From Adineta vaga (taxonomy: Eukaryota; Animalia; Rotifera): DNA of 64,000 nt. Made by a program: the position numbers and the translations under genes. Location: NCBI GenBank assembly GCA_021613535.1, contig CP075495.1, positions 15,314,001 to 15,378,000 of the forward strand. The letters run 5' to 3'. The notes below the pieces were generated by a model, which saw only the letters and a program-made list of their open reading frames with translations, did no database searches and was not told the DNA's origin. Shown piece after piece: positions 241 through 33,864 of this stretch (positions are counted from its first letter, which is position 1; the number at the start of each line of letters is the position of its first letter).

Positions 241-811
241 ATTTGAATAAAAAGATACGGTTCTAAAAAAGGTCATTTTTTTCTTTTTGTAGAAAAATAA
301 CGAATAAATATTTAACAGATTTGGTGCAATGATTAGTGATAAAAATAATAAATTAGATTATTCTCACAGATATCCTGAGAAAAATATTAGTGCGGTACAA
401 AAATAAAATAAATATTCCTCGCGGGACAATTCAATATAAGTTTTATCCCGTCCCGTCGGTCTCTGGTACATTATACATGTTTCTCGAAAATGATTCATTA
501 ACATAAATATTTCTTATATGATCGACGGAATGGTTTCAAACACATGATGAATAACAACATTTCATTTGAGACAAAGCTTCATGTGATCTCATAGAAAGAG
601 ACATTTGATAGTTTTTTATGAATAATAATGAGAAAATAAATGAAAATTGATGTTGTCTCTATATGTTTTCACTGAATATTCCTGAAAGAATACAAGCACA
701 AACTCAACTTTCAAGAAAACAGTATGTTTCGATCGATTACTATAAGTATAGTCTTTGTTTTTCAGTTTTTGTTAGTTTTAGTACGAAGATTATTTCTGTT
801 GATAAGTAGAA

Positions 812-2982
812 ATGAAATCAACAATAGTACCGATCAATACACAAAATAATAAATGCGAGTCATTGTCAGTAAACTCATTTGTCTCATCAGAACAAATCCA
901 TTCTACTAGTAACGATCAGGTATAATGAGATACGCTAAAAAGTGAATCATCAATTATCTGAATATTTATTATAGAAATGGACTTCATCATTGATATGGGC
1001 TGTAATTATTGTAACGTTTTCAACAAGTTTCGTGATGGGAGTCAACACAGGTGGTCCCAATCTCTACAATGGAGTAAGATAGTTTTAGTTTAATATTCAT
1101 GGTTTTAATCTTAATTTTTAGTTTATTACTCCATGGTTACGAGGATATCCATTTCCTTGTCAAAAAGAAGATAGTACATCTCAATGGATAGCACGTGTTT
1201 GGTTAGGATGTGATTATATCAATACAGCATCGAAAAATCAAAATGGTTATTATTATTTACCTTCTATTCCAGAAAAACGACGTGTTGCACAAAATTTTAT
1301 TGATTCACTTCATGGAATTATTTTTGTTATTGGAGCAGCAATTGGAAGTTTTACTGGACAATATTGGTATCTATTTTTAACAAGGTTTGTATAAATAAAA
1401 TGTCGTTCCTTTTTTCGCTTACAAAAGATTTTGTGAATAGACGAAATGCACTTATTATGGCAATGTTATTTCAAATCGTCGCATCAATTTTAATGATCTC
1501 TACACTTTTGATTTATCATGCAAATAATCTAAATGATCCAAATCTTCTTGATATTCAATTAGCATTACAAAATAAAGATTTAGCGATTAGTTTGTTCTAC
1601 CTATCACGTTTTCTTTCTGGTTGGTCAGCTGGTAAGTATATCATTATTTCGTATGATTATAATGATTATAATAGTTACAATTGTTATTCCTATAGGTCTA
1701 AGTTGTGTTGTAACACCTATCTATCTAACTGATATAAGTCCTCGTAAGATGCGTGGTACACTTGTTACTTATCATCAATTATTGATTGTTATCGGTGTTC
1801 TTATTGGTCAAATTGTCAGTCTTCCTTGGTTACTTGGTCAACATGAGTAAAAGTTTATGATCATTTTATTTAGATAATTCTTTGTCTTTTCTAGTAAATG
1901 GCATTTGGGTATGGCATGGATTGGAATATTTCCTCTAGTTGGTTGTTTTTTAATGTGGACTTTAGATGAAAGTCCACGATGGTTAATACAAGATCGTCAA
2001 CGCCATGCTGCTATTGAATCATTACGTAATTTACGAAAAACAAATGATATTGAAGAAGAAATCAAAGAAATTGAACGAGAAGAATTAACAGTTAATATCC
2101 AAGATTCATCGTTATTTCGTCTATTAACATCATCTCGATTTCGTTGGCCATTATTAACGAGTATAATTCTAACAGGTGTTTCTCAATTTTCTGGTATTAA
2201 TGCTGTAAGTATTATTAAATAATTGATTTTCTTTTATATATCTAATCTAAATATATTTTGATGATTGATCAAAAGGTTTTATTTTATTCTCATGGAATAT
2301 TTTCACAAATGGGTTTACTTGAAGATAAAGTTTATTGGACTGTTCTTTCAACTGGAATGTCACTTGTTATTTCAACATTATTTTCTATTAAACTTATCGA
2401 ATCGTTTGGTCGACGTCCTTTAATACTTTATCCACTTGCAATAATTGTTATTATTATGATTTTATTATCTATATTTTTAAAAATTAATCCAGGTATGTTT
2501 TTTTTTCTTTCTTACTTTTTTTCTTATAAAATTCTTTAATTTCAAAAAGAGGGTTTGATCATTGTAATTTTATTACTTATTTTACTTTTTATTACTTTAT
2601 TTGCTGTTGGTTTGGGCACTATACCTTATTTATATCCCAATGAAGTATTTACTATTAGTGTTCGACCTATAGCTCATTCTATTGCGATGTTTTCTCTATT
2701 TTTCAATGATGCATGTAAATATATCATTTATCTTCGAGATATAATTAATAAAATAAGATTTTTTTTTTTTCTTTAGTAGTTATTGTTCTCTTTCCACTTC
2801 TACATTCTATACTTAATAGTTATGTTTTTTTGATATTTTGTATTTATTGTTTATTATCATTTGTTTTTCTTTGGAAGAAGGTAAATATGAAATTTCTTTC
2901 GGTAATTGAATTTTGATTTGTATTTTAGATGCCTGAAACAAAATATAAGAAATTTCATGAAATTGAAGAATTTTGGTGGTAA
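812..2982 (+). CDS. MFS sugar porter, SLC2A/GLUT-like facilitated hexose transporter (multi-exon)
   Basis: ATG 812, ~10 short GT-AG introns; PIYLTDISPRKMRG, ESPRWL, SQFSGINAV, ESFGRRPL, GLGTIPY, MPETK motifs; TAA 2980-2982. Confidence 0.9.
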
Positions 2983-3093: not shown

Positions 3094-6000
3094 TTAATTT
3101 TGTTTTTTCATTAATTCAAATGGTATTGTTGTTGGTTTCGATGGAAATAATTCATAAATCTCTTCAATTGAAATATCATCTTCAATTACAATTCGATCAT
3201 CATCCGTTAAAGCATATAATTCATATAAATGATAATCTTCTTGAGAAATATGTAATTTTTCTAATGTTTCTTTAAGAATTCTATTTACTAATATATCCGA
3301 AGTACATGGTAAAACAATTATTTGTTCATTGAATTTAATTGAACTATAAATTGATGTTGTTGAAATCAATTGTAATTGAATTTCTGTCATTTGAGAATCA
3401 ATATCATCTAAAGTAATATCTTCATCATCAAATAAACAATCATCATTCTTTAATTGATAATAATTTTTGTTTATAGAAAATAATTGACAAGCAATAGAAC
3501 GTAAATGTTCAATAGTTATTGTTAAAGAACAAGAAAATCGAATAGTTTGATGATTTTCAGTATTTTCAATGATAACATTGACGGGTAAATTTTGTTGAAG
3601 TAAAGTAAATCGAATTGGTGAAGTTGATCCAAAGGAAAATAATTGTGTATTGAGTGATGGAACAAAACTATCGGATGAAAGAAGAAATTGATGATCAATA
3701 TCGAATTGATTTTCTTGATAAATATCAGAAATCTTTGTAAATATTGTATATCGTTGATGAATATCATTATCATCTTCATCTAATTCAAGTAATTGATTAT
3801 TTTTAGGTTTTTCAATTGAAATAAGACATGTTTCATTTTCTTTAACTAAAATAAATTTTGTCTCACGTAAATTTGATAATTTTTCACAATAATCAACAAT
3901 TTTTTTTGTAAAATTTGATGCTAAATATTTATAAATATTTGATGAAACCTTACTTGATTGTAAGATATATTCCATAGTTACATTTCGATTAGGAAGAAGA
4001 ATTGAAATCGATTCGGAATTATCATATCGAACGATTTGTACCAAAATTGATATACGAAAATCAATAGATTGATTATCTGTAGTTATATAATTATCTACAG
4101 ATTGTTGCATATCATTTTGAGAAAGAATTTGTTCATTTGTTTCTCCTAAAACAAGAACACAATCATTAGGAGATATATCAATGAGTTTTAATTGTCGAAG
4201 AAGTTGATCATTGTTTAATAGATGAGAAATTCTCGTGGATTTTAATGCATAAATTGATGCTTTATTTGTTTCATAGGTAAATGTTACTTTTGTTGTTGTA
4301 TTACGATCTATTCCATCGATAATTATTGATTTTGTTGGTTCAAGTATCGAAGAAATCGATTGATCTTCATCAAGAATAAGTTTTTGTTCTTTATGAAGAA
4401 AAGCGAATTCATTCGTTGGTGAATCAATAAATTGAGCGAAATGTTTCAACCAATCATTAACATGTTGCCAATTAGCAGCTGAATGAAATAAACCGATTTG
4501 TTCTTGATCTATAAATAAACAAAAGTTAGGAAGGATTCAATTTTCATATGAAAGAGATTTTATGTACTTTGTTTTGTTTGTAGAGTAATTTGACAAAGAA
4601 AATTTTGATTAATATTCTCTTCAGTAACAATAATTGGAATGACTTTTGTTTCTGAATTATCCATTTGTTTGATCAGATCATTAATTGTTCCCTTTTCAAT
4701 TGTTGTTCCATGTTCGTTGAAGAAACAAAGATAACTTTCATCTGATGAAGGTTTTATATCTTGATCAGTAAGATAATGATGGATAATTGTTGAAATATTA
4801 CATTTTGATGTAACTAAATATTCGATTTGAGTTTCTTGAAATCGAAATTGAATTGTAAATAAGTGTTCTTTTTCAATAATAAAATATTCTTGAGAGATTT
4901 GTTTTGGTAATTTTCCATTAAAATCCAATAGAATATCATTTTTATCGCAAAGTGCATATTTATTCACATCATGTTTCTTCTCATCAAATAATTTACGTAA
5001 TCTCTCAAATAAATTTTCACTTTTCCCCATACTTGAATGAACATTTCCATCTGGATGAGTTACACTAAGTTTTAATCCTCCTTTTACAACTGTTATTGTT
5101 TGGTCATTTTCTGTACGAATTTGTTCGAATAAACTTGATGTTGTTAACGGAACTAATTTCAAATCCAATTGAAAAAGAGAAGAATAATCAAAAGATTCCT
5201 CTGAAGTTGTTGTTGTTATGGGTTGAGGAATTGGAACTATCTCTTTTTGTTCAGTAAATTCAATACCATCACCAAGTAAATCTTCTCCAATAATTGTATT
5301 CGATGACATATATTCTGAAAGATCTAACCAAATAGTATCGTCATCTGGGAGAGGTAGATTCTCTTCTACTGTTGTTTCATTAAGATAATTAAGAAAACGG
5401 TTGGGTTGTTGATGAAGAGATTTGTTATTAATACTTTCATTCCATTGTGTACTTTGTTTTTCTTCAATATTAACCATTCGTTCTTGTAATATTGTTCGCA
5501 TTCGAATTAAATGAATACAAAGTGCAACATAATTTTCACATTTAATTTCATTTGGAATAAAATTCAAAATCGAACTTTCAATTGCTAAGATTTGACATGT
5601 TTCTTTCAATGAATCTGCCCATTGTCGTTGAAGAAAATATTCATTTGTTCGAAGATCATTTAAGAAATCTGTAAGAATTTGAATAAACGATTTAATTCTT
5701 TCAATATCATCAATACTAATCGTTGCAGCTTGTAACATATCTGTAAGTTCATGATCAATTTGTAAATCAATAGATGTTCGTAAAGATTGAGAAACATCTG
5801 TGAATAAATGTTGAAAATCACTAATAGAATTCGCATATAATTGTCGAATATGATCAAAATAACATAATTGAAAATCTTTAATTTCGTATTGTTGAATTTG
5901 TTGATAAAGATTCTTTTCATGATCAAATGTTTGAATAAATTCATAAAGATTTCTTTGAGAAAGATCAGTTTGTTGATGTTTTAATTGTATGGCTATTTGT

Positions 6001-9000
6001 CGAAGAAGATTATAACCATGATAAAGTTTATCTAAATACATTTCTTTTAAATAATTCCATTCATTTTCTAATTGTTGTTCATTCAATGAAATACAATATT
6101 CTTTATTTAAATCAAATGTTTCATTGATTGTATTCTGTTGAGTTCGTCGAATATAATATTGATAATTTTGTATTATATGTTGATAATTAATACGACAAAG
6201 TAAAAGATATGTACGAATTAAATATGATTGAAGATAAAGAAAATCAAAATGAAGTTGAGTATCTAATTGTTGAAAATATTCATCATTTTCTATTAGAAGT
6301 GTTGCACGTGTTAATTGTTCAATCCATGAACAATCATGATCTGTTAATGTAATGACACCGGTATTATCATGAACAATTTGTAAAATGGAAACTTCTTTTG
6401 AAATTAAATTATTTACTAAAGTTTTCAATGCTCCAATGATATGATTATTATCATCATCATTTACTTCTTGTTCAAGTAAATTTAATAAACTATTGTGATA
6501 ATCAATCAATACTCTAAAATATTCAAAATAATCTTTATACTTGAATAAGAATGTGTTACATATCCAATCCTTACCTGAGTATACGCATAATAATATCTCC
6601 TTCGTCAGTATTTCCTGTTGTAACGAGATAATGTATTGGTGTATTACGTGTTATTTTTGTAAAACGTTGTGTAAGATCACAAGCACCTGGTCGAATAAGA
6701 CCATCAGTAAAATCATGATAGGCATTGACAGCTTCGATTCCATGATCGATAATAATTGAATAATTGGTATTATGATTATGATGTTGGAAATTTTGATGAT
6801 TATTCGAATGTTTTTCACCTCGTTTGTACAATTCTTCTAATGTAACATTGAGAAATTCATCTCGTTCAACTAATTGTGTATAAGTTTGATGAAGAAGAAG
6901 ATAAAATTGACTAAGATTATAAATCCATTTCATAATTTTCAAGAAATCAGTTGAATCAAGAATATGTCGTAAGACTTTCAGAGGTAATTGAAATGATACT
7001 GGATTATGTAATTCAGTTTTAAAATCTCGAAATTGTATTTGAATTGGAAGTTTTGTTATAAAATTTTGAAGATTTGATTGAATTTCTGATTTTAAACTTA
7101 ATCGATTAATAAAACTTTTATATTCTCCTAATTTTTGATGAATATAATAAAAGATTTTATTTTGAAATTCTTCTCCAGCTTTTAATTGATCATTAATCGT
7201 ATTATAAACAGGTTTTATCCAGGAATTTTCTGCTTGTTGATAATTTAATGTTAAAAATGCCATTCGTTCAAAACAACGATTTAAAAGAATACATGCATCA
7301 TTACAATTCGAATGAACTGATAAGAAATTAAATGTCGATAATAATCTTGCTCGAACAAAATGACAAACTTTTGTTCGTTGTTCATTTCCTGCAAGACGAT
7401 GTAGAGCTGTATTATCACCTATGGCATGTGGAGCAAGAATTGGTCCATGTAAATTTTGAACTGATTCACTGAATAACAATAGATGCCAAGCCTAAAATCA
7501 AGTATAAGAAATAAAAAACAATGAGATTCGAAACAAAACAAAAAAATACATACCATTGCACCAAATGTTGCAAAATATGCGACATAAATCGCTGGAACAT
7601 TTAATGCATTAGCATGTCTTTGACCGAAATGCATTAAATCGCCATTTTGTGTGATAATACAACCACAATCATAATGAACACCATGTTGTTCAATAGTTTG
7701 ATGTGCTGTTGATCCAAAACCTAAGAGAAAAGAAGAATAAATGTAAAAAATATATTCTTGTATAAAGATTTTACCAAATGTATTGAGTAATGTTAATGGT
7801 TGAAATGTAAATGTCCATAGGAAATTTTGTTTTCCTCCTAAAAGAATCATTGCTAAAAGATTAACTAATGAATGACGAATACATAATTCATCTTCATCTT
7901 TACAATCAAGATGAAATAATTTATTTAAATAATTTTGTTCAAGATTTTCATTTCGTCTTGGATATCCAATCATATAATGTTCAGGTTGTAAGAAAACACG
8001 AAAAACTCGTAATTCTTCAGGTAAAGGTTCTAATGTATTTTCAATAAATGCTAATAATGTACTGAGAGATACTAATCGATTTGTACAATAATAATCATAA
8101 TAAATATTTAATAATAACATTATTTTTATTTCTTTAAGATCGATAATACATGGATTTGTATTTCGTTGTAATTGAATCCAATCGAATAAACTCTTCCATT
8201 GTTGATCATTAACAAGATTTTCTTGAATAGAATTTGTAAGAATTAATTTTAATTGTTCGTAAGATTGATGAAATTGTGGAAAGATTGATAAAGTATTATC
8301 TGTTGATAAAGTAAATTGAATTTGATGACATAATTGTAAATGTTCATTTCGTTGTGTTGTTTGTTGAATTTCTAATAATTGAGATAATTGCTTTGCCCAT
8401 TCATGATGAAAACGTTGAATTGAATCAGATTTGAATAAATTTAAAAGAAAATTCCATGAACGTTTTGAAATAATTGTCGAAAGAAATAATTGAAGATGTT
8501 CATTCAATTGAATTATCTCACCATTTATAGTTAAATATGATGGAATAACCATTGCTAGAATTCGATCAATACTTCGTTTATCATCAGGAGAAATATTACT
8601 TTGACATAATAGAATCGCTGTTAGTCGTACGAGAAAATAGATTTGTAAATGTGTAAAAAATTCTTGAATAATATTTGTAAAACGTTGATTTCGTAAATTT
8701 GGAAGTTTTGATTGCATTATTTTATTAACAAATTTACATGTTATAATTTCATCATTAATCGATCGTTGAAGATAAAAGAAATATAAATCGAGAAGTGGTT
8801 GTCGTTGTTCATCAATCGAAATAACAGATGGATGATAAGGTAAATGATAATTTTGAATAATTAGTTCATCATTTCCAATACAATCAATAATCAATGTTAA
8901 AAGTTTGATTCCACGATCCCAACAATCTAATTTTTGTCGATTATTTCGTTCCGATTCTTCAAGATATAAATTAGCTAATTCATCAAATAGAAATTGTTTC

Positions 9001-12000: not shown

Positions 12001-15000
12001 TTAAAAACATCATAAAGTGATCCATGAATTCGTCCGGTATTTACCATTAATATTGTCTTTCCAGTTTCCATACATAATTTGATAGTTGATAAAATTTCGA
12101 CATTTCGTAATTCATTATGAATATCATCAGGAAAATCTGACATTCGAAAAACAGTTGTACGATTAGGATCTAAATTAATAATTCCACTTTGTGAAAGTAA
12201 ACGAACAGCACTTTCATCTTCGGATTCATCAATAATTAATTTATATCGTCCATAAAGACGACGTCGAACTGAATCAAGTTTCATTGATTGACTTAAAATT
12301 GTTGGAACATTACGACGATTTGAAGGTAATCGAAAGTCGCGACATTGTTCTTGAACAGCTTGAAAAAATATTTGTACTAGTTTTTCAAAATCATCTTTTG
12401 ATATTCCATTAAAATTATCTTCCAATGCATGTAAAAGACTTATGGGTGTTATTCCTGCAAAACGTGCGTCTTGATTATTATTATTATTAGTATCATCATC
12501 ATCATTTGTTGTTGGTGTTAGTTCAAAACGTAATTCACGTAACATATAAATAAAATCACGATCGTGATAGATATGTGGAATATTTGGTTCATTCAATATT
12601 CGTCGATACCCTTGACAGAGACCATAAATAATCGACTGAAGACGCTGATCTACTACTTGTTGATTATCATCAATTCGAAGACCAAGACAACCATAAGCTA
12701 AAATCTTTTGATCATCTTTCGATGGTAAGGAACGATAAACACAAATCATTCGATTTGCATTTGCTGCATCGAAAGCTCTATTTGCTACAGCCACGAATGC
12801 TACTTTACATTCATCTAAATAAGGATGTAACACTTTTAACACCATTTTCTTTTCATCAGGTAGTGAAGCTTCATCCAAGAAAACAACCTATAAATTACGT
12901 AATTATTTTAATTTCTAGTTGAAATTTTGGCCATAAACTTACACATCGTGTATTCATTCGATTTTGTTCGTAATGTTGTTCACGTTTAATTGCTCGTTCG
13001 AATATATATGCAATATCTTCAGAACGACTATATTTTGATCCAAGACAAAAGAATGGATCAATAGCTGGCAAACGTTTACAGAATGGTTTCGTTGATAATT
13101 GGGAACCTTGAAGATTTTGTAAAACAATTTGAAAAGATAATGTTTTGGATTGACCTTAAATAGAAAAAGAAGTATATTAACAATGTTTACAAGTATAAAG
13201 TTAGCTGACCTGGTGCACCAATTATACACAATGGTGTTCGAGTGACAACACTAACCACAATTGAAAAGATATGTTCACGAACCTATCAAATAATAATAAT
13301 AAAGAGAAGAAAAGTCGAATGATTTCTCGAAATATAATTCACATACAGCTTGATTAATGGCAACACCATGTGGAATAACAAAATTATCTGTATTAACAAA
13401 TTTATCTAATTCATTTTGAATAATATTAATAAAATCAGGTATCGTACGAGAAAGTACTTCAGCAAGTTTTTCTCGTGGTGGTGTTTCATCGTCTCCTCTT
13501 TGTTCATTATCTTCAGCTGTGGGCAAACGAAAATAATAAATTAAAGCTAATGCTAATGCAATACATCGAATAGGATTTGGTTGATACATATCATTTTTTA
13601 TATCAATTTCATCATCAAATCGAATTTTCCAAAAGAAATCAATTAAATTAAAACATCGTTGAATTTCACGTTGAGAAACAGAATTACGTCCTAAAAAATA
13701 AAGATGTACATCAAAGATAAAACGATAGGAAAAAAATCTCAACTATTTACCAAGATATCGTTCACAAAATTCTTGTGCATTAAGAATCGATTCAGCCAAC
13801 ATTTCTTGAGCATATTTTTCTAATGGCATCTCCATTTGTTTTTTATCTATAGAATTTCCATGAAGTCTCTCAATTTTCTTATCAATATAACTTTTCAATG
13901 ATGATTGTTCTAATGCACCATAACAAACTTTTAAATTTTCTAATGCTTGTGGTAATTGATGGACGAGAAAATCTCGTCGATGAACAGCTTTCTCATCTGT
14001 TGATTGTACAAATGGATTGATTGCTGCTGTAAAAAAGATATTTTCGGGTAAATTTTTGCCATGTAATGTTCGATCCATAAACATTTCTTTGAAGAGACCA
14101 AGACATGATGCTGTATTAACTTCATCGAAAAAGACAACTAATTCAATATGAGATAATTCACGTGCTAATTGACAAATAGGAAACATAAATTGTTCAAGTT
14201 CGTCTTCTGTTATACCTGGATGTAATAATAAACGATAGAATAACGGTTTTATTTGACTATATATCACATATTCATTGAATATTTCAATAGATTTTTGCAC
14301 AGTTAATGAGCGAGTGTCTTCGAGTAACGTTCGAAGACGAAAACCAGTTTCAATTAAAGGAAAATTAGTTAACTGATAAGTGACATATTCAAGTAATTCA
14401 TTCATCAAGTTTTGAGCAATATTCATAGCATTTTCGCTGGCGACAATCATAAGTGTTTTCCATAAATATCTTAACATTTCATTGTTATATTCAAAATTTT
14501 GTAGAGATTGTTTAATATCTTGTAATAACGGAAGATCGATTGGTACTATTGGTCGAATAACTTGTGCCGCTGCTACTGGCGGTGGTACAACATCTGGTTC
14601 AGGTACACGATGCGCCAAACTTTCGTTGAATTCATTTTCAAAATCATCGTTTAACTGTTGACGATAGATATGCGCAAGTTGATTTTCTCTTACTTCACCA
14701 TCATCATCATCATCATCATCATCAACAACAACTTGATCGTCATTATCAAGACCCATAAGTTTTGGTTTTATTCGTTGTAAAAATGTATTTAATAAATTTG
14801 TTTCACTTTCTAATATTTCCGAAATAATTGTTGTTAATAACCATAAACTAATTCGTTCTCGTACTCGTGGAGCAACATTATCATTAATTGGTGCATTGAT
14901 TATATTCGAATTCAATAACAGAGAATAGAATTTAAGAAGAAATGTTTTTCCAACTCCCGTATCACCTTCAATGATCAACGATAATTTCGTTAATTTTCTT

Positions 15001-18000
15001 TCATGAACATGAAATAATTTATAAGCAAAATTTTCTGTTAATATAAACTTTGTTTCATTCATAATTTGAATGAAATCTTCATATTTAATATCGATTAACC
15101 ACGATAAACATTTCGCATAATAATCTTTACCTCGAAATTCTGGTCCAGAAAACGGATTTTCATTATGAAATAATTGTTTTAATGGTCGTGAAACATGATT
15201 CCAATCATCATGTAATAAATGCAAAGCAAAATATGGATCATAAACAAGATAAATTCGTGGATAATTTCTAATACTGAAGTCAATTTGAGAAAGAGATTTT
15301 GCTTCATTGATCATTTGTTTTAAAGCAGTTGAACCAAGAGTTTTATCTAACATATTATAACGATAAAAATGACCGGTAAAAAATTTCGCTCGACGATATA
15401 AAAATTTCGTAAAGGAAAGTTCGGAAATTTTATTTCGTGGTAATTCTGGTGCATATTTTTTAATACAATCATAAATATAATGACGACATTCATCTGGATC
15501 GGTTAGTTTGTCGAAATCAACAGGTTGATCTTCACCATTTGATTTCACAATACATTGACGATCAATAGTTTGATTTTCATAAGCTTTTAAAAATCGAGCA
15601 ACTAATTCTTCTTCTTCTCCGATGAATAATTGATAATTTTCATTCGTAATTTCATCTAACGTATTTGATGAAATGATCGATAAAATTGGTAAAATTCGAT
15701 CGAAATTTTCTTTTATTGTCATTTGATATTGATCTGTATGAGGAATTTCTATAAAAAATTTCCATTGTTTATTTTCCGGTAATGAAAATGTAAGACCAGT
15801 TGTATTATCTGTTAATGCTCCACTAATAAATAAGGAAAGTAGAGTACGATTCAGTTGTTCAAATGGTGCATGAATTGATATATTAAATGAAACAGATGGA
15901 TTCGTTTCATTTGAATTTCTTGAATCAAATGAAAGAAATGAACTAATTAACATTGATAAATTTAAAGTATCATTAATACTAAAACAAGATGTTTCAGATT
16001 TTTTATATTTTGTATTGATTCGATGTGTTTTACCTAATGAAAATTAAATGAAGATTACGGAAATGAAAAAATAAGAAATGAATTTACCAATTCCAGCTTT
16101 TCCACAAATGATTTGAATTTGTGATTGTATCCAATTATTTTGTTGAAATAATCGTGTTATTTGTGTATATGTATGATAAGGATGACGAAATCTAGGTGGA
16201 ATATGAAATAATCTTAAACCTTTTCGACTTATTGTTAATTCTTTTGAAAAATAATAAACAGTTCCATGTGGTTGTTCGAATTTTGTTAATTCTTCTTGTT
16301 CTTTTAGAAGAATTTCACGAAGACGATGATGCATTTTATCGATATCCATAATAACAAATATTAAATGTCGAAAGATTCGTATACGAAGAAAAAATAATCG
16401 AATATCATCTTCATTTACAATTGAACACCATAGAATTTGATAAACCGATGGTAAACGATCAGCAAAGAGATTTAAAAGAACACAACAAGTATCAAGATCA
16501 AAATCATGTTCAATAGATGTTTGTTCAGATGGATGTGCCCGTGTAGAATGAATTGTAACAAGATATTGTTGATTTTCATTCGTTGTTTTATTTCTTTCGA
16601 ATAATTCTCTTCCATTATTAAAGATTTTTTTTAAAAATTCAGATAATTGTTCTAGACCGGTTTTTGCTGGTGAATTTGGTTCAATTTTATAAATTTCATA
16701 AAGACGTTGAACATTTGCTTCTGATAAATCACAATTATTAATTTTTAAAGAACGTAAATAATGTATTAAACATTGAATTGTTAATTGTAATTCTTTATCT
16801 TTATTTTTAGAAATATCTTTTGATAATGAGAATTTTTCGAGAAAATGACATTTAATTTGATTTTGTCGTGTTGATGTTGTTAAAAGAATGATAAGAATCA
16901 TTATTTGACGATTACAAAATAAATTAACTAGATGATTATGTTGTCGATATTCAACTAAATTTTGTATCCACATATCATAACTTGTTTTTAATGCACGATA
17001 AATTAATTCTAAATTATCTGTACGTGTTTTCACAGCACGTTTTAATCGATCTTCTCGTATACGATGATCATCTCTTAATTCGGAAAGTATTTGATCGATT
17101 TCACCTGAAACGATAAAAAGCTTTTAGTGCTATTGCTTCGGGATTGAAAACGTGAAACACGATAGATCTGTTTTTATTGATAGTGAGGATGAATGTGGGC
17201 TATTCTCATCCACGTCCAAACCCTCAAAGTGGTCCAAATGTCTGCTCATAAACACTTCAACACTCTCTTTCAGATCGTGTTTCACAAAACAATAAGAATT
17301 AAAGTAATTGTTCATTAATTTGTTTTGTTTTTCTTACCTGATCGATCGGATATTTCATAATCTTCTTCTCTCACTTGATATTCAGGATGTCCAGCTGTTT
17401 CTAATTTACAAAGAATATGAAAAATATTTTCAACAATTTTTAATAATTTTAATTGTTCATTTAATAGAATCTTTTTATAGAACATATTTTCTTGAAGATC
17501 AACATTACAAAATGTTAATTGACGTTTATGATCATCAATATCACTTTTTGTCAAAGTAAATTTCAATACTTCAGATCGATTATATTCATCATCATCATCA
17601 TCAGTTTCATTTGGAAGTTTTTTAATTGAATATCCAATTTCGAAAAAAGATTGTTCATTAAGTAAACGTCGAAGATATATTTTAACTGTTCCTGTTCTAT
17701 ATAAATGTTCCATTGTTATTAAGGCATTATCTAATACTGTTGTTTCTTCAGCTGATAACCACATTTTAATAATTTGTGCATTTTCATTAACAACTAAGAA
17801 GAGAACGAAAAAGATTTTTCTTTTAGAATTTCAAATTAGATTACTTTGCATATGTTTAACTGAATGTTCTTCAAAATTTGATAATCTTGCAATACGATCA
17901 ATAAATTCATCAAAAGTTTTTGCTTGATGAACAAATGGTTCACATAAAGCATAAGCAATAATCCATGAATTTAAAATCATATTATTACGTTCTTGTAATT

Positions 18001-21550: not shown

Positions 21551-22704
21551 GCCGTCGATGAAGAAAAAAACCCAGTCTTTTTCTTTCTTTCTTCCAACAG
21601 AAAGGAAAATAAAAAACACAAACTCGACTTTCCGTTGAAATTCTATATTTCACGTTATTGTAAAATAAACTTTCATATGTATGGTTTTATTGCTGTCATT
21701 CTCTAAAGTTTCTTATGAAAAAATGTATCTATATATCATTTATGATATGTTTCGAAGAGTAACGAAAAACAATGTTGTTCTTTCAATGTGAAATGTGAAT
21801 TTTTACTGTTGACTTCATTTCTTATCGCAAAGCGGCGCATTAGAGAAAGAAAAAATATTCTTGACATGACTCATCAACTGCAGCTAGGGAAGTTTTATTC
21901 TCCAGGAAAATGGTAATAAAATAATCAGTTTATTTGAACTATAAATAATGAAGAACATTTTGTTGAGAAATGAATTATACTTAACATAATCCATCAAATT
22001 AGGCTGAGCATTTTGAAAATTCTTAATTGTGGATAAATTAGTTGGTTCTTATCACAATCAAATGATGTTACTCGTTATAAACATTGAATTAAATCGAATT
22101 TTTTGATCGCCTACAAAATAAATCGTTTTTATTAAAACTGATTGGAACAACAACCTGAAACACTTTGCATTGAAGCTAAACGTTTACATTCTTTATCATA
22201 CAATTTTTTTGTCTTGATAGAACGACGGATCTGTGTATATAAACATGCTGGTTAGAACTAATAGAAACCGTAACTATCTATCAATCAAGATAACGAAATT
22301 TCATAATGTCTACATAAGACAATTCATTGTCGATCGAATGGAAAAAACTTTATTGATCAATCTGTATCTTTCGCTTTAATTTTTATTTGTTTGAGAGTAA
22401 GCGTGGGCGTCATTATTTCATGTACACACGTCTCACTCGCATTTTTGTATGTTGCATTGAATAGATAGTCAAATAATAAAATATTTATCTAAATGCAATA
22501 TGTCATGATTACTTGCCAAGTGTTACGTGTTCTTCTAAATTAGAACATGGTCGAATGTCTTACAAAACATAATCTATGCGCGAAAAGAATAAGTATATTT
22601 ATGTTGTGATCTTAACAAAAAACGAAAGATGACATTTATACAATCGCGTTCTCAATCCTTTCATATCTTTATTGTAGATATTGTCGTTGACAATCAAATT
22701 CAAA

Positions 22705-23988
22705 ATGTATTGCAGGCTCTGTGTACTTTATTTCTTTACTTTGATTCTAAATGGAATTGCTTTGAAAGAAGTTGATTCCAATGTTCGAAAACAAAAGACA
22801 ATTGATAATAATTTATTGGAACGATTGCGTGCAATGCAAACTGAATTGAATGTAATTCGCCATGATATTCACGCTCATCCAGAAACAGCAATGAAAGAAA
22901 TACGTACTTCTGCATTGGTCGCTGTTAAACTTAAACAATGGGGTATCAATGTTACTGAAAAAGTAGGTAAGATGGGTGTAGTCGGTACATTGAAGAGTGA
23001 TGAACTAGGCTATGGTTCGATCGGTTTACGTGCCGACATGGATGCTCTTGAAATTAATGAACAAAATAATCTACCGTATATTTCCACAATTCCTGGTCTC
23101 ATGCATGCTTGTGGCCATGATGGACATACTACAATGTTGCTAGGTGCAGCTAAATATCTAGCAGAACATCGAGATTCATTTCGTGGAACTGTTCATTTTA
23201 TCTTTCAGCCAGCCGAGGAAAAAGAGAATGGTGCCTTAACCATGATCAATGATGAACTTTTTGATCGATTTCCAATGGATGCAATCTACGGATTACATAA
23301 TTCTGCAGGTATTTCTGTTGGACAGTTTGCTACACGATCGGGTCCATATATGGCAGCGTCTGGAACTTGGATTGTGACGTTTCGAGGTACTGGTGGTCAC
23401 GGTGCAACACCACACTTAGCTACCGATGTTACTATACTACTAGCACAATTCATTGTCTCATTACAAACTATCGTTAGTCGTAATGTTGCACCAATGGATG
23501 CAGCGGTCATCAGCGTAGGTGTTATCCAAAGTGGTTCCTTTAGTTCATTGAATGTCTTACCATCGGAAATTCGTGTTGGTGGTACTACACGTAGTTATAC
23601 GAGAGAGGTACGTGATACAATCGAACGACGGATACAAGAACTGGCACAGGGTCTTGCTACTAGTTTTGGATGTACTGCTGAAGTGGTATTCCATCGAAAA
23701 GGATCTCCACTTGTCAATGATTTGCTGTCCACGCAGAGAGCTATTAAAGTAGCTGAAACTCTCGTGGGTCCTGAAAACGTCGATGGAAACGCAGCACCAA
23801 TAATGAGTTCAGAAGATTTTGCTGAATTCCTTGTAAAAAAAGCGGGTGCCTTCATTTCTATGGGAATTGGAAATCGAAATGGTGAACTCCATTCACCAAC
23901 ATACAACTTCAATGATAATGCAACTATTTTCGGTGTGGGCTACTGGGTAAGTCTTGTGCAACAAGAACTGCATACATCTAAATTGTGA
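22705..23988 (+). CDS. M20D amidohydrolase (hippurate hydrolase/Acy1-like), intronless, N-terminal signal peptide; HGT candidate
   Basis: RHDIHAHPE, LRADMDAL, MHACGHDGH, FQPAEE, GLHN, GTGGHGA, SEDFA, LHSPTYNFND; first ATG 22705 followed by hydrophobic leader. Confidence 0.92.
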   Translation: MYCRLCVLYFFTLILNGIALKEVDSNVRKQKTIDNNLLERLRAMQTELNVIRHDIHAHPETAMKEIRTSALVAVKLKQWGINVTEKVGKMGVVGTLKSDELGYGSIGLRADMDALEINEQNNLPYISTIPGLMHACGHDGHTTMLLGAAKYLAEHRDSFRGTVHFIFQPAEEKENGALTMINDELFDRFPMDAIYGLHNSAGISVGQFATRSGPYMAASGTWIVTFRGTGGHGATPHLATDVTILLAQFIVSLQTIVSRNVAPMDAAVISVGVIQSGSFSSLNVLPSEIRVGGTTRSYTREVRDTIERRIQELAQGLATSFGCTAEVVFHRKGSPLVNDLLSTQRAIKVAETLVGPENVDGNAAPIMSSEDFAEFLVKKAGAFISMGIGNRNGELHSPTYNFNDNATIFGVGYWVSLVQQELHTSKL

Positions 23989-29015: not shown

Positions 29016-32000
29016 CTACCAGAAGCGTTTAATTGACTCTTTGAATCCTTTCATATATATCTTTGACGGCAGAACGAATACAGCAAAGATCAACGTTGAT
29101 GGAATGAATGAAATAAAATATCCAATTAGATAGAGCCATGGATTTCTAGCAGATTTCATACATCCAGATAAGAATGAAATGATTAGACGAGGAAGTGCTA
29201 ACAGAATAAGAATAAATGGTGAAATCAATAGATGTTTATGATGTTGAAATTGCTCATGTAATATTTTTTTATAAGATTGTGTTTTCTGAATATTCGAACG
29301 AGTACGAGCTGTAGCAACAATGATGACTAATGCTGAAATACAATTGATTGCAAAGGGTACAGAAAAATGAAGAATATTCAAAGCCCAATCATACATTTGT
29401 ATCGATGTTGAATATTTAACTATACACCATGTACGTTGTTCTTCTTTATCATCGATTAAATTACGGTAAATGGGATCATGAATATGTGTAGTAATGGTGA
29501 ATAATAATACAAATAGAACCATCCATTTAGCGTATTGTTTGCTCTTTACTTTATTAAAATAGATTCCTTTTAAAACATTCACCGCTCGTTCCGTAGCTAC
29601 ACAAGCACTAAGCCAATCACCAGTGCTTAGAACAAATCGAAGAAGAAAATCGATAGATATACATTGTATTCGTAAAAACCAACGGTTTTGGATCCAATTC
29701 ATTTGTGATGCAAGAAGAATCCAGAATTTAAATGTTAATATAATTATTGTAATCATAGATGTAATCGAAAATGTTAACAGATAGAATCCACAACCGACAT
29801 TACATATTGTTTCTCTTTGAAAAGTGAGAAATGAAGAAAAACTATTAACAAAGCCTAAAACGAATACTATAGTAGTAACTGCAGTAGTAATATGAACAAT
29901 GAGAGATTGTTGAATAATTCCAATGTTAGGACGAATTTGATAGCCCAAAATCGTATCTAGTGAAAAAGTCGATCCTTTAGTAGAAAATTGACATCTTGAC
30001 CCATAAAAACATTCAGGACAGACACAAATCGATGATGTTGGACACTTTGGATCATCTGTAAAGCATTGACCTCCGTTTTCACATGAATTTTGACCATGAC
30101 AATCGTTAGTAAGATTATGTTCAAATTCAAAACAATTGCTTCGTCGATTAAGATCACATAAACAGAAGTGAATATCATCATAGAAACAAACTAATTCGAG
30201 TCGTTTTTGACAAGGAATATGATAGGATTTAATACGTTTTAATAAATGTTGATTAGCAAAAGAATTATTAAATAAGTCATGAATAGATGCGCATCGAAAA
30301 GAAGGCATGATTTTTGTAGAAAGATTTACTGAAATAATTCTCTGTTCTCGAAGAATAATCAAATAATAGTTGTTGAATATTTCGACAAAAGCAATATTAA
30401 ATGCAGTTGATATGTAGAATAAAAGTGAATTCTGATCAAATGCAATGTGTTTCATTAAACTTCTTCGAATGGGTTCTACATCTTTTTCAATTGTAATAAA
30501 ATGAACGAGTAATGATTGTGGAATCGTAAGTGTTTTATGAAACGATATATCGATTCGAGTCTGTCGATATTGACATCGATCTCCATAATATTCTTCGGAA
30601 CAAATACATGTGGATTTATTTAGGTATTTATCTATATAACGTTCATCAGTAGGTACACATTGACCACTGTTAGTACATGATTGACTATGACATGAAGAAT
30701 GATGAAGATAACATCGAGGACCAAAATGATTGAGAGAACATATACAAATGAAATTATTGATACATAATGAATGAGATGCACATTTACATGTATATTTAGT
30801 AGAACATTGATTTCCTGACCAACCATGTTCACATTGACAGAAAGTTAAACTTTGATTATTGACATAATGAAAACGACGACCATGAAAACATGATTTTGCA
30901 TGATTTTTTAAAGGTTCAACAGCTGATATAGGAATGATAAGTAGTAAAGATAAACGATGTACAGGTAGAAATGAAAATTGAAGTGGAAAGATCCAACTAG
31001 CTCGATAAGTCAATGTCAATTTATTATATGCATCAATCCGCACTGAATAAGTTTTTGATATATTTTTTGGTCGAGTTGAATAGAGTAAATATATATTAAA
31101 TTTAGTGTCACAATCTCGAACAGCTAAATATTCAATATAATCATGTGATTCTATATTTTCTTCATCGTCGATCAATGTAATTAGAAAAGTGAATAAAGTG
31201 CGCCAATCTGATGTTACTCGTATTTGAAATGTGAGACTAACACGTTGATTTTGATATTGACACATATCCCCGTAGTAACTGGGTGAACAAAGACAAACTA
31301 ATTCATCAGTCTCATTATCAACTCGAACATGCATCAGTAGACCTCGATTACATCGCCATTCGTTATCATATTGCATGTCATCAATTTCATTGTTACTATT
31401 TATCACCTGAGTTTTATTCTCAGATAACGATACAAGTGTAATATTTTCAGTCATAAGTTGTAGTGGATATATTGGCATATCACGTAGAGTAAAATAGATC
31501 TTTCGTGGTAATATCATATCACAAAACGAACGAGTTAAGAAACTTTCAATTCCCGTTTGAGGCAATAAATTGTGTTCACAATATCCGTAGGAATTAAAAG
31601 ATTGTTCACTCGTACAGGATGATTCATCGTCGCCAGATGGACAATTTTTTTCTCCATTACATAGATAAATACTACTAATACATGTTTTATCGTTCTGACA
31701 GTAATAATTTTTCCCAGCCCTAGTCAGATAAACTGATTGACAATAATTACGTTCATCTGTTGCACCAAGACAATCGATAATATCATCATTAACTTGTGAA
31801 ATTGGCAAACACGATACTCTAGATGTATCGTTCAGAAAAATGCAACTTTGATGTAAATCAGGACAAATCCAAGGTAAACAATTAAATTCATCAGCTCCAT
31901 CTTCACACGACCAATATCCATCGCATCTAGTATACGTATTATTACATTGCCAATGTATACATTCTGTTTCGTCTGTCTCATTCTGTCCATCAATTAATAT

Positions 32001-33864
32001 AGGCAACAATTCTTCAATTCCATCACATATCTTTTGAAAATAAATGTGAGTTTTTAAAGACATATTCTGTTTTCTATATTCATCCTCACCATATGGGCAA
32101 TCTTTCTTTCCGTCTTGAATGTTCAATGGTGCGACACACATTGTGCTGTTATTTACTGAACAACTGAAACGATAATTAGCATATCTGAGTGAGCAGCTCT
32201 GATTAAATGTTTCATCGTCATGCAATGGACAGTCTTGAATACCATCAACAAGACGATGTTTCGATATAAATTTTGTAGAATTTTCACAATGATACATCGT
32301 GGTGTAATTAATATAATATGTTTCATTTGACATAACTAAACATACACGAAATCGGTCTTTCACATAACTGACGAGCGTATCCCAAAATTCATCCGAATCT
32401 ATTTCATCTAGTCCTAACACATTAAAATGTTGACAAGCCGAACCATTTATATATATTGCATCTGTAAGAAAGTCTTCACAAAGTTCTTCATTATAACAAA
32501 CGTAAACTGGTAGAGGAAGATCATCAGGATCGGATTGATTTCCGTCATTCATAAAGAGAAAGCGTACATGTCCAAATAAGATCGGATTTGAAGGAAATTG
32601 ATACAATGAAGGACATTTGTCTTTTACACAATCACCTAACATACAATAATCATCACACCATTCACGAATACGATCATGAAGTCTCATTAGACAAGCCATG
32701 GCACGTGCACAATCATTCTCAATCAAAAGATTATCACGACCATTTTTGCACATTGACCATATACTTATTTCACGCATACATGTACCATCACCACACGTAA
32801 ATTCTTCTTCTCCTGGTCGACATGCATGTTCTTCACATCGCATAGAAGGATCATCAGAACAATATTTCGGATAATCAAAATATGAAGGTTCATCAGTTCG
32901 ATCTAAACAATCTGGATTGATTAAACCATCATGAAAAAATTCTTTTGGAATACATTGACCATTGTAACATCGATATTCATTTTCATTACATTCGTTTATT
33001 TCAAGTTGCCAACAATTTAACTCATCCGACGCATCTAAACAGTCGATTTTTCTATCACAAATTTCACGCCAGTCCAAACACAGATATGATGTTTGACAAT
33101 TAAGATGTGTGTAACATGTTACTCTTGATGTCTCCATAAGATTATCTTTAGATTTCAACATGCGAACGACCAATTCAGCAAATGATCTATCGTTATCTAG
33201 ATCAAATGCAAAGCGACAGAGAGGACCAAACCATGGTGGTGTACAATTATAGAATTGTACTTCGTTATCAAACAATGATAATGACGAATTTGATTGATTA
33301 TTCAAAAAGATTTCGTAATGTTCAGCTAGATCAATAGAAGCTGACCAAGAAAGTAACGTTTGGCTGCTAATATTTTTCTCTTCTAATTGAGCAAAAGTAA
33401 ACGAAGAATCCATTGTATTGGTAAAATTGGAGTATTCAAAAGTAAAAATATCATCCGATGGTCGGAAGCAGTATGGAATTACTTGATGTCCTATTGTCCA
33501 TTTAAGAAAAGAAAAAGCACATAAATAGTTTTGAATAACCTTTTAGTATATCGATATAACGAGATGATGAAGTTTATATGAAAAGTTTTCTTTATAAACT
33601 TCAACACATCATCATCAATCCTCTGTAGAACAATTTTTTTAAGCAGTTATTTAAAAAAAAATATTCACCTGTCTTTCTTTTTGAAATGGGCCCTAAAACA
33701 TATAATTGTTCATGAATATCATAATCCTCAGTATCGTTGGGTACATAATATAAAAGACAATATCCATTTTGAAGATGATTAGTATTGTACATATTAAACA
33801 GAAGATGGGACAATACATGAGTTTGGCAAATAATAAATATATAGAATAGTAACATATTGAACAT
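29016..33864 (-). CDS. LDLa- and EGF-repeat rhodopsin-class 7TM receptor (2 exons, ~1,550 aa)
   Basis: Signal-peptide exon 33864-33669 spliced in phase 1 to exon 33490-29016 (HQVIPYC); LDLa motifs CDxxxDCxDxSDE, EGF motifs, C-terminal 7TM with ACVATERA and LPRLIISF. Confidence 0.88.

Follow-up and report, generated by a model that had tools for sequence, protein, structure and literature searches.

The stretch of Adineta vaga DNA analysed here (contig CP075495.1, positions 15,314,001 to 15,378,000; 64,000 nucleotides, hereafter the window) is AT-rich, with a GC content of 24-38%. On its minus strand lies a giant multi-exon gene that runs from ~21.4 kb down to position 3094 (window coordinates are used throughout). 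The last ~640 residues of the giant protein, hereafter the tail, are encoded by two exons, at 5201-4569 and 4506-3097. Judging by structure prediction, it is close to certain that the tail consists of eight tandem, very diverged ubiquitin-fold (beta-grasp) domains, labelled U1 to U8 from the N-terminal side.

The giant gene is transcribed, and is spliced as modelled across a 59-nt intron between the tail exons. An RNA-type contig of run X18 jumps from 4508 to 4568, a step of exactly 59 bases with GT..AG ends on the coding strand, and a contig of run X9 breaks off in a loose end that matches the end of the upstream exon (exon A). DNA run X1 is contiguous, and so unspliced, over 4509-4567. The intron is missing from the paralogues on contigs C3, C1 and C5, each of which is a single open frame. 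In some database relatives (P0109-P0111 and P0001), the called open reading frame (ORF) ends at the equivalent intron or runs on through it.

The two tail exons were searched and folded separately, never as a joined protein. An exhaustive HMMER search with the downstream exon (exon B) yielded 108 representative clusters at 50% identity, 56 of them below E 1e-30. Alignment A2, for exon B, holds 56 sequences. Alignment A4, for the exon A part of the tail (4569-5201), holds 19, and the homologue search with this part contributed only three further sequences. The AlphaFold2 (AF2) model of exon B (470 aa, from A2) had a mean predicted local distance difference test score (pLDDT) of 92.7 and a predicted template modelling score (pTM) of 0.86. 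In this model, DSSP assigned repeated strand-strand-helix-strand-strand(-3_10)-strand units. The model of the exon A tail (211 aa, from A4; pLDDT 87, pTM 0.80) contains a leading strand and helix, two full units and the first strand of U3, which is split by the intron. As predicted by AF2, the tail opens with a short strand-helix element, after which come eight beta-grasp units, each 73-87 aa long. An earlier note, made from the letters of the window, had placed the start of the tail at 5080 and had counted about eight units of 75-85 aa; the anatomy obtained with AF2 and DSSP bears this out. The strand-strand-helix-strand-strand pattern described there is also recovered, and the two stretches quoted as its clearest instances are U7 and U8, the best-matching units.

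Foldseek comparison of the exon B model with the Protein Data Bank (PDB) placed linear tetra-ubiquitin on top (7yui_A, E 8.2e-16; also 5b83). The HUBL region of USP7 followed at ~1e-11 over ~540 aligned columns, and linear di-ubiquitin, ISG15 and the chicken OASL pair of ubiquitin-like domains (di-UBL; 7sbi) were also matched. For the exon A tail, containing U1 and U2, linear di-ubiquitin (E 3.2e-6), ISG15, FAT10, OASL and the talin head were recovered. Across Foldseek and VIA, matches were almost exclusively to ubiquitin-like (UBL), UBX, SUMO, Ras-binding (RBD) and FERM-F1 domains, with VIA Z values of 8-12. The AlphaFold and Foldseek check named in the earlier note has therefore returned repeated beta-grasp folds, and the likeness drawn there to the tandem UBL tail of OASL is matched by the presence of 7sbi among the best structural hits. 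A shape search of the ESM Atlas with the model found polyubiquitin-type clusters only (TM 0.22-0.30). The predicted fold is that of these clusters, but the global arrangement of the model is common to no deposited cluster.

At the level of sequence comparison, the units have diverged almost beyond recognition. Self-BLAST of the tail gave no significant internal repeat. When all pairs of units were compared using hhalign, U7 and U8 were the best pair (E 7e-6), U2, U4 and U8 were weakly linked, and most pairs were unrelated by sequence. Searching PDB sequences with exon B, using phmmer, gave a blank result, and the window's own tail had only sub-threshold Pfam matches, to RBD (E 0.13, in U8) and Med26. 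Related proteins were more informative. Among the 56 family members scanned against Pfam, TUG-UBL1 was matched in 21 and RA in 18, and nearly all matches were to beta-grasp families; rarer matches were to SNX17-F1, PI3K_rbd, ubiquitin, Par3_HAL_N_term, Ras_bdg_2, FERM_N and YukD. The TUG-UBL1 and RA matches exceeded the gathering threshold in U4, U7 and U8 of some paralogues. Thus, paralogue P0005 matches RA in its U4 region (21.6 bits) and TUG-UBL1 in its U7 region (31.9 bits), and the U8 regions of P0007 and P0008 match TUG-UBL1 (36.7 and 24.0 bits). Of the window's own units, U7 alone could be aligned with a UBL by sequence, its profile matching the UBL of NP95 at E 0.031. The profiles of U4 and U6 found no PDB sequence match and only noise in Pfam.

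The features of the tail are collected in Table 1. The N-element that precedes U1 is modelled with a pLDDT of 86-92 (AF2 model m76b15a98947a), and its consensus is kept in alignment A4. The halves of U3 are seen in separate exon models: the first strand (DSSP E201-209) ends the exon A model, and the exon B model opens with a further strand, a helix (13-27) and strands at 34-38, 43-44 and 63-67. In paralogues, U3 is contiguous and lacks the intron. The nearest protein-language-model clusters to U4 are Rad60-SLD/ubiquitin at 0.88, which serves as a lead only. U6 is covered by a VIA-align alignment to tetra-ubiquitin (5b83_A) that spans model residues 154-470, corresponding to U5-U8, with 273 residues aligned.

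Table 1. Features of the tail and its exons, in window coordinates, with the predicted folds of the units
Feature	Position	Strand	Description
Exon A	6509..4568	minus	Tail part from near 5201; ORF 6509 to 4560; donor a/gt at 4568/4567
Linker	5202..5330 (upstream limit ~5320-5330)	minus	Between helical CTD-like (C-terminal domain-like) domain and tail; indel-rich, poorly conserved (alignment A1)
N-element	5085..5201	minus	Y-S-S-L-F-E-L-type strand (a10-18), helix (a23-31), short connector; DSSP E10-18, H23-31
U1	4866..5084	minus	UBX-like predicted fold; UBXD7 UBX (5x3p) VIA Z 8.2, root mean square deviation (rmsd) 2.6, 73 aligned; FAF1 UBX Z 7.8
U2	4605..4865	minus	SUMO/ubiquitin-like predicted fold; SUMO-2 (4bkg) VIA Z 8.4, rmsd 1.9, 70 aligned
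U3	4300..4604	minus	Intron-split: strand 1 in exon A 4604-4569, one split codon, remainder in exon B 4506-4300
Intron	4509-4567	minus	59 nt, GT..AG, inside U3; read from sequence, RNA-confirmed
Exon B	4508..3097	minus	After ...ttatag acceptor; in frame 4506 to 3097; stop 3096-3094
U4	4051..4299	minus	Best-conserved unit among paralogues; DSSP topology b71-152; multi-unit alignments to HUBL and polyubiquitin
U5	3832..4050	minus	RBD-like predicted fold; SIN1 Ras-binding domain (7lc2_D) VIA Z 10.8, rmsd 2.3, 72 aligned, model 153-227
U6	3589..3831	minus	Long acidic insertion in first hairpin; DSSP b226-303; pLDDT 77-79 in loop
U7	3355..3588	minus	Most ubiquitin-like unit; FAT10 (6gf1) VIA Z 12.1; Ddi2 and Dsk2 UBLs 11.8; rmsd 1.4-2.2
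U8	3097..3354	minus	FERM-F1/RA-like predicted fold; IDOL FERM F1 (6qly) VIA Z 12.1, 4.1R 11.4; ends ...MKKQN; stop 3094-3096

RNF213 is central to vertebrate cell-autonomous immunity. The AAA exon of the window (13743-15953) matches RNF213 chains and structures at E 3.5e-5. In a full-length relative of the giant protein, P0130 from Didymodactylos carnosus (4911 aa), ~730 residues align with the AAA core of RNF213 at E 7.6e-34. By these sequence matches, the host of the tail is an RNF213-family AAA giant, its core being homologous to the dynein-like six-AAA core of that family. Hence, the rotifer and mammalian proteins (the latter also called mysterin) have in common a homologous core and a giant size. 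They differ at the C-terminus: mammalian RNF213 lacks UBLs, its last domain being a bilobal helical CTD that binds the E2 (PMC7311170, PMC12075652), whereas the rotifer protein has the linker and eight UBLs added. The E3 module of RNF213 bears a RING and an RZ finger. No RING family was detected using Pfam in the window's exons or in the 4911-aa relative, the RZ finger not being among the domains searched for. No USP domain was found using Pfam in the gene pieces scanned, and the upstream C-terminal exons had no match among PDB sequences in phmmer.

A few proteins with tandem UBL arrays have been described, such as USP7 with its HUBL region and OASL, ISG15 and FAT10 with their pairs. The USP7 HUBL comprises five diverged, non-conjugatable UBLs in a 2-1-2 arrangement after the USP catalytic domain; it binds partners and regulates the enzyme. 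Searches of the literature available to us turned up no account of an RNF213-type AAA machine that bears eight such units, or indeed any UBL. The beta-grasp fold and tandem UBL arms as such were already known. The USP7 HUBL resembles the rotifer tail in being a C-terminal array of mutually diverged, non-conjugatable UBLs on a large enzyme of the ubiquitin system, and Foldseek aligned the whole exon B model to it. Unlike the rotifer tail, it has five units rather than eight, and its host is a USP protease rather than an RNF213-like AAA protein; no equivalent of the activating C-terminal peptide of HUBL is shown in the rotifer tail.

The structural reading of the earlier note is supported in full. 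The functions suggested there, namely a mimic of a polyubiquitin chain, a docking array for the proteasome, p97 or autophagy receptors, a decoy for deubiquitinases and a substitute for missing ligase fingers, stay conjectural. We favour an explanation along these lines. The array would have been appended after the helical region, which stands where RNF213 has its terminal E2-binding CTD, and would be tethered to that region by the poorly conserved linker. It would fold as a semi-rigid multi-domain arm instead of a floppy chain; that the domains pack in a defined way is suggested by the high pTM of the two models. The arm would most likely serve as a platform for protein-protein interaction, in the manner of the USP7 HUBL arm, and could either recruit partners and substrates to the AAA machine or regulate it, using unit-specific, fast-evolving surfaces. 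Taken as a whole, the proposal that the tail is a semi-rigid interaction arm with surfaces of this kind, and does not simply reproduce a ubiquitin chain, has in our estimate slightly better than even chances of being correct.

The chief competitor of this proposal is that the tail is a built-in mimic of polyubiquitin or ISG15. On this account, receptors for ubiquitin and UBLs (the proteasome, p97 adaptors or autophagy receptors) would read the array, so that a machine possibly devoid of ligase fingers would mark its bound target with a tag of its own. The best structural matches are of the kind expected, being linear tetra- and di-ubiquitin, ISG15, FAT10 and the OASL di-UBL, and one linear di-ubiquitin conformer (2y5b_F) fits a pair of units with a TM of 0.66 by target (Foldseek). 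The lack of a Pfam-detectable RING, noted above, also fits. In addition, work cited in PMC12075652 links mammalian RNF213 functionally to conjugated ISG15, which is a di-UBL. The properties of the units point the other way. In structural alignments they are only 10-18% identical to ubiquitin and UBLs. Pfam 'ubiquitin' was matched in just 3 of the 56 family members, each time below threshold, TUG-UBL1 and RA being dominant. The residue of U7 equivalent to Ile44 of ubiquitin is Lys in the window, as read from the weak NP95 UBL alignment (E 0.031). The units are strongly acidic; most have a negative net charge, which reaches -9 in U7 and U8. UBX domains of p97 adaptors have a conserved Arg and a Phe-Pro-Arg loop, with which they reach into the N domain of p97; U1 has no FPR motif in its sequence, despite its UBX-like fold. 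Finally, the packing is predicted to be fixed (pTM 0.86) and not that of a flexible chain, and global TM values to polyubiquitin were 0.19-0.30. We regard the mimic as unlikely.

Linear (Met1-linked) polyubiquitin and its precursor are like the tail in carrying beta-grasp units head to tail in one chain. The polyubiquitin hallmarks of near-identical repeats and a Leu8-Ile44-Val70 patch are not found in the tail, the units of which are barely recognisable as repeats, lack Gly-Gly ends, have a non-hydrophobic Ile44-equivalent in U7 and are predicted to pack rigidly. ISG15, FAT10 and the OASL di-UBL are tandem UBLs of innate immunity, and the OASL pair, like the tail, is not conjugated and sits at the C-terminus of a larger protein. 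They differ in having two units instead of eight, ISG15 and FAT10 are conjugatable via Gly-Gly, and their sequence relation to the tail is no better than E 0.04. The tail has a single Gly-Gly, which stands at the start of U1 and is unconserved. We considered this as a relic processing site and rejected it for want of conservation. As the earlier note had proposed, no unit ends in Gly-Gly, either in the window or in paralogues; hence, the units are non-conjugatable.

The matches to Ras-binding and FERM domains raise a different possibility. The units could be modules of the Ras-association or FERM-F1 type. By binding small GTPases or membranes, they would direct the machine to organelles, to lipid droplets or to the surfaces of pathogens. 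In keeping with this, weak Pfam matches to RA, PI3K_rbd, RBD, Ras_bdg_2 and SNX17/FERM-F1 recur, U5 resembles the SIN1 RBD (Z 10.8), U8 resembles FERM F1 lobes (Z ~12), and the F0-F1 pairs of talin and kindlin are among the matches. These families have the generic beta-grasp fold in common, so the matches do not discriminate between them. Furthermore, the net acidic charge of most units is unfavourable for contact with anionic membranes, and no GTPase-binding motif was identified in the tail. We think it very improbable that targeting of this kind is the function of the array.

Returning to the proposed interaction arm, we compared the conservation of the tail over long and short timescales. 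Mean identity between the window and its paralogues was 32-41% for the units, of which U4 was highest. The helical domain, at 43%, lies above this range and the linker, at 26%, below it. The nearly invariant columns of the units are core Leu/Cys residues, and the conserved columns in general are core hydrophobics, a pattern to be expected where a scaffold is kept and its surfaces vary. In the exon A tail, Asp a93 (...LLDF motif) and Tyr a106 (...QEYFII motif), both in U1, are the sole positions invariant in 19 paralogues. They may form an inter-domain contact or a binding site. The closest copies of the tail are 42% identical in the same genome and 60% identical in the database. Since synonymous sites are saturated at such identities, the ratio of nonsynonymous to synonymous divergence (dN/dS) among paralogues was set aside and within-species variants were used instead. 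These were read off the assembled contigs of four public runs, and the sample is small. In the tail (3097-5084) there were 15 nonsynonymous and 6 synonymous variants, giving a ratio of nonsynonymous to synonymous polymorphism per site (pN/pS) of ~0.63. Conversely, in the 1.4 kb upstream, on the side of the helical domain (5085-6509), there were 3 nonsynonymous and 10 synonymous variants (pN/pS ~0.07). The contrast was significant by Fisher's test (p 0.012, or p 0.021 on run X1 alone). This is an indication, and only that, of tail surfaces that change much faster than the adjoining domain on a fold that is kept in the long term.

Fast change could also be the mark of an arms race. In mammals, RNF213 acts against microbes and is the target of a Shigella effector (PMC11958729). 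The tail might then lure away, as a decoy or bait, those enzymes of pathogens that have ubiquitin or UBLs as their targets, such as deubiquitinases and ligase effectors. The elevated pN/pS of the tail, compared to the adjoining domain, and the many diverged paralogues (the 108 clusters described above) would suit a decoy. A deubiquitinase would find no Gly-Gly or scissile junction between units, and the ubiquitin recognition surface is not retained. Moreover, long-term conservation of eight units across bdelloid genera suits a structural role equally well. A decoy is, in our judgement, a highly unlikely explanation.

That conservation is evident from the distribution of the tail module, which is conserved across bdelloid rotifers. 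All named relatives are bdelloid (Rotaria magnacalcarata, R. socialis, Rotaria sp. Silwood2, Didymodactylos carnosus and A. vaga), and every database relative is labelled an 'unnamed' or 'hypothetical' protein. In the A. vaga genome (100.8 Mb, six contigs) the tail is present four times in full, and there are two fragments besides. Three of the four full copies directly follow the helical CTD-like domain, in giant genes, and two of these three are single open frames without the U3 intron. The fourth (C5:816256-820647, ORF 793..2904 on the plus strand) is an intact ORF of 703 codons that starts just before the N-element and comprises the N-element and eight UBLs; 682 aa of it are annotated as the A. 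vaga hypothetical protein UJR19001.1, with 100% identity. Upstream lies an NHL-repeat ORF that ends in a stop, and no other exons of a giant gene occur within 20 kb upstream or 7 kb downstream. The tail module thus seems to exist as a stand-alone gene also, which argues for autonomous function. Separately, a decayed-looking partial duplicate lies downstream of the giant gene, ~6 kb before the first base of the window (contig C2:15307610-15307939, minus strand). It corresponds, at 81% identity, to the final ~110 residues of the tail (the end of U7, plus U8) and has three stop codons.

The stand-alone gene bears on two further explanations. In one, the tail is an intramolecular regulator: one or more UBLs would fold back onto the body of the protein, at its helical CTD-like or its E3-like part, gating E2 access or ATPase-coupled activity, much as the UBL of Parkin or the HUBL tail of USP7. 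A flexible linker does tie the tail right after the region that is positionally equivalent to the E2-binding CTD of RNF213 (PMC12075652), and the nearest sequence relative of U7 is the UBL of NP95/UHRF. Support from complex prediction was not forthcoming, the score of 0.00 being evidence neither for nor against docking, and the stand-alone tail gene lacks a body, which again argues for autonomous function. We consider self-regulation improbable. In the other explanation, tagging would be independent of ligase activity. A machine that had lost its RING and RZ catalytic fingers would instead carry a permanent eight-unit UBL 'chain' in cis. Binding to a target (a pathogen, an organelle or a lipid droplet) would then be enough to mark that target for degradation or autophagy, no ubiquitination having to take place, and the free-standing paralogue would be a soluble competitor or adaptor. 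This scenario is a long shot.

Several observations weigh against the interaction arm that we favour. The geometry between domains was predicted from an alignment of paralogues only, and pTM is the sole basis for describing the arm as semi-rigid. The model does not superpose on the USP7 HUBL (TM ~0.15, rmsd ~30 Å), making the analogy architectural only. U3, U4 and U6 have no single-domain structural match; their assignment draws on model topology, on multi-unit alignments to polyubiquitin and HUBL, and on a weak feature search. The predicted complex of the helical domain (exon A residues 1-400) with exon B, the source of the 0.00 score, gives no verdict on docking either way. The pN/pS contrast derives from few variants and could reflect relaxed constraint instead of adaptive change at the surface. 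By analogy, partner binding is nonetheless the most likely role of the tail, and stays putative.

A lineage that hard-wires UBLs onto an RNF213 chassis, and keeps a free copy, offers a natural experiment on how UBLs are coupled to such a machine. Since the tail is small, well predicted and expressible, the search for partners and the determination of its structure should be straightforward.

Elsewhere in the window, three ORF pieces on the plus strand (1364-2539), just downstream of the 3' end of the giant gene, resemble exons of a sugar-porter-type major facilitator superfamily transporter. On the minus strand, there is a 1465-aa ORF (29016-33413) in which a seven-helix membrane region comes after numerous Cys-rich LDLa/EGF-like repeats. 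A 435-aa intron-less ORF on the plus strand (22681-23988) is amidohydrolase/peptidase M20-like and has a local GC content of 0.36, compared to ~0.27. Intron-less, GC-richer genes of this type are often discussed as horizontally acquired in bdelloids.

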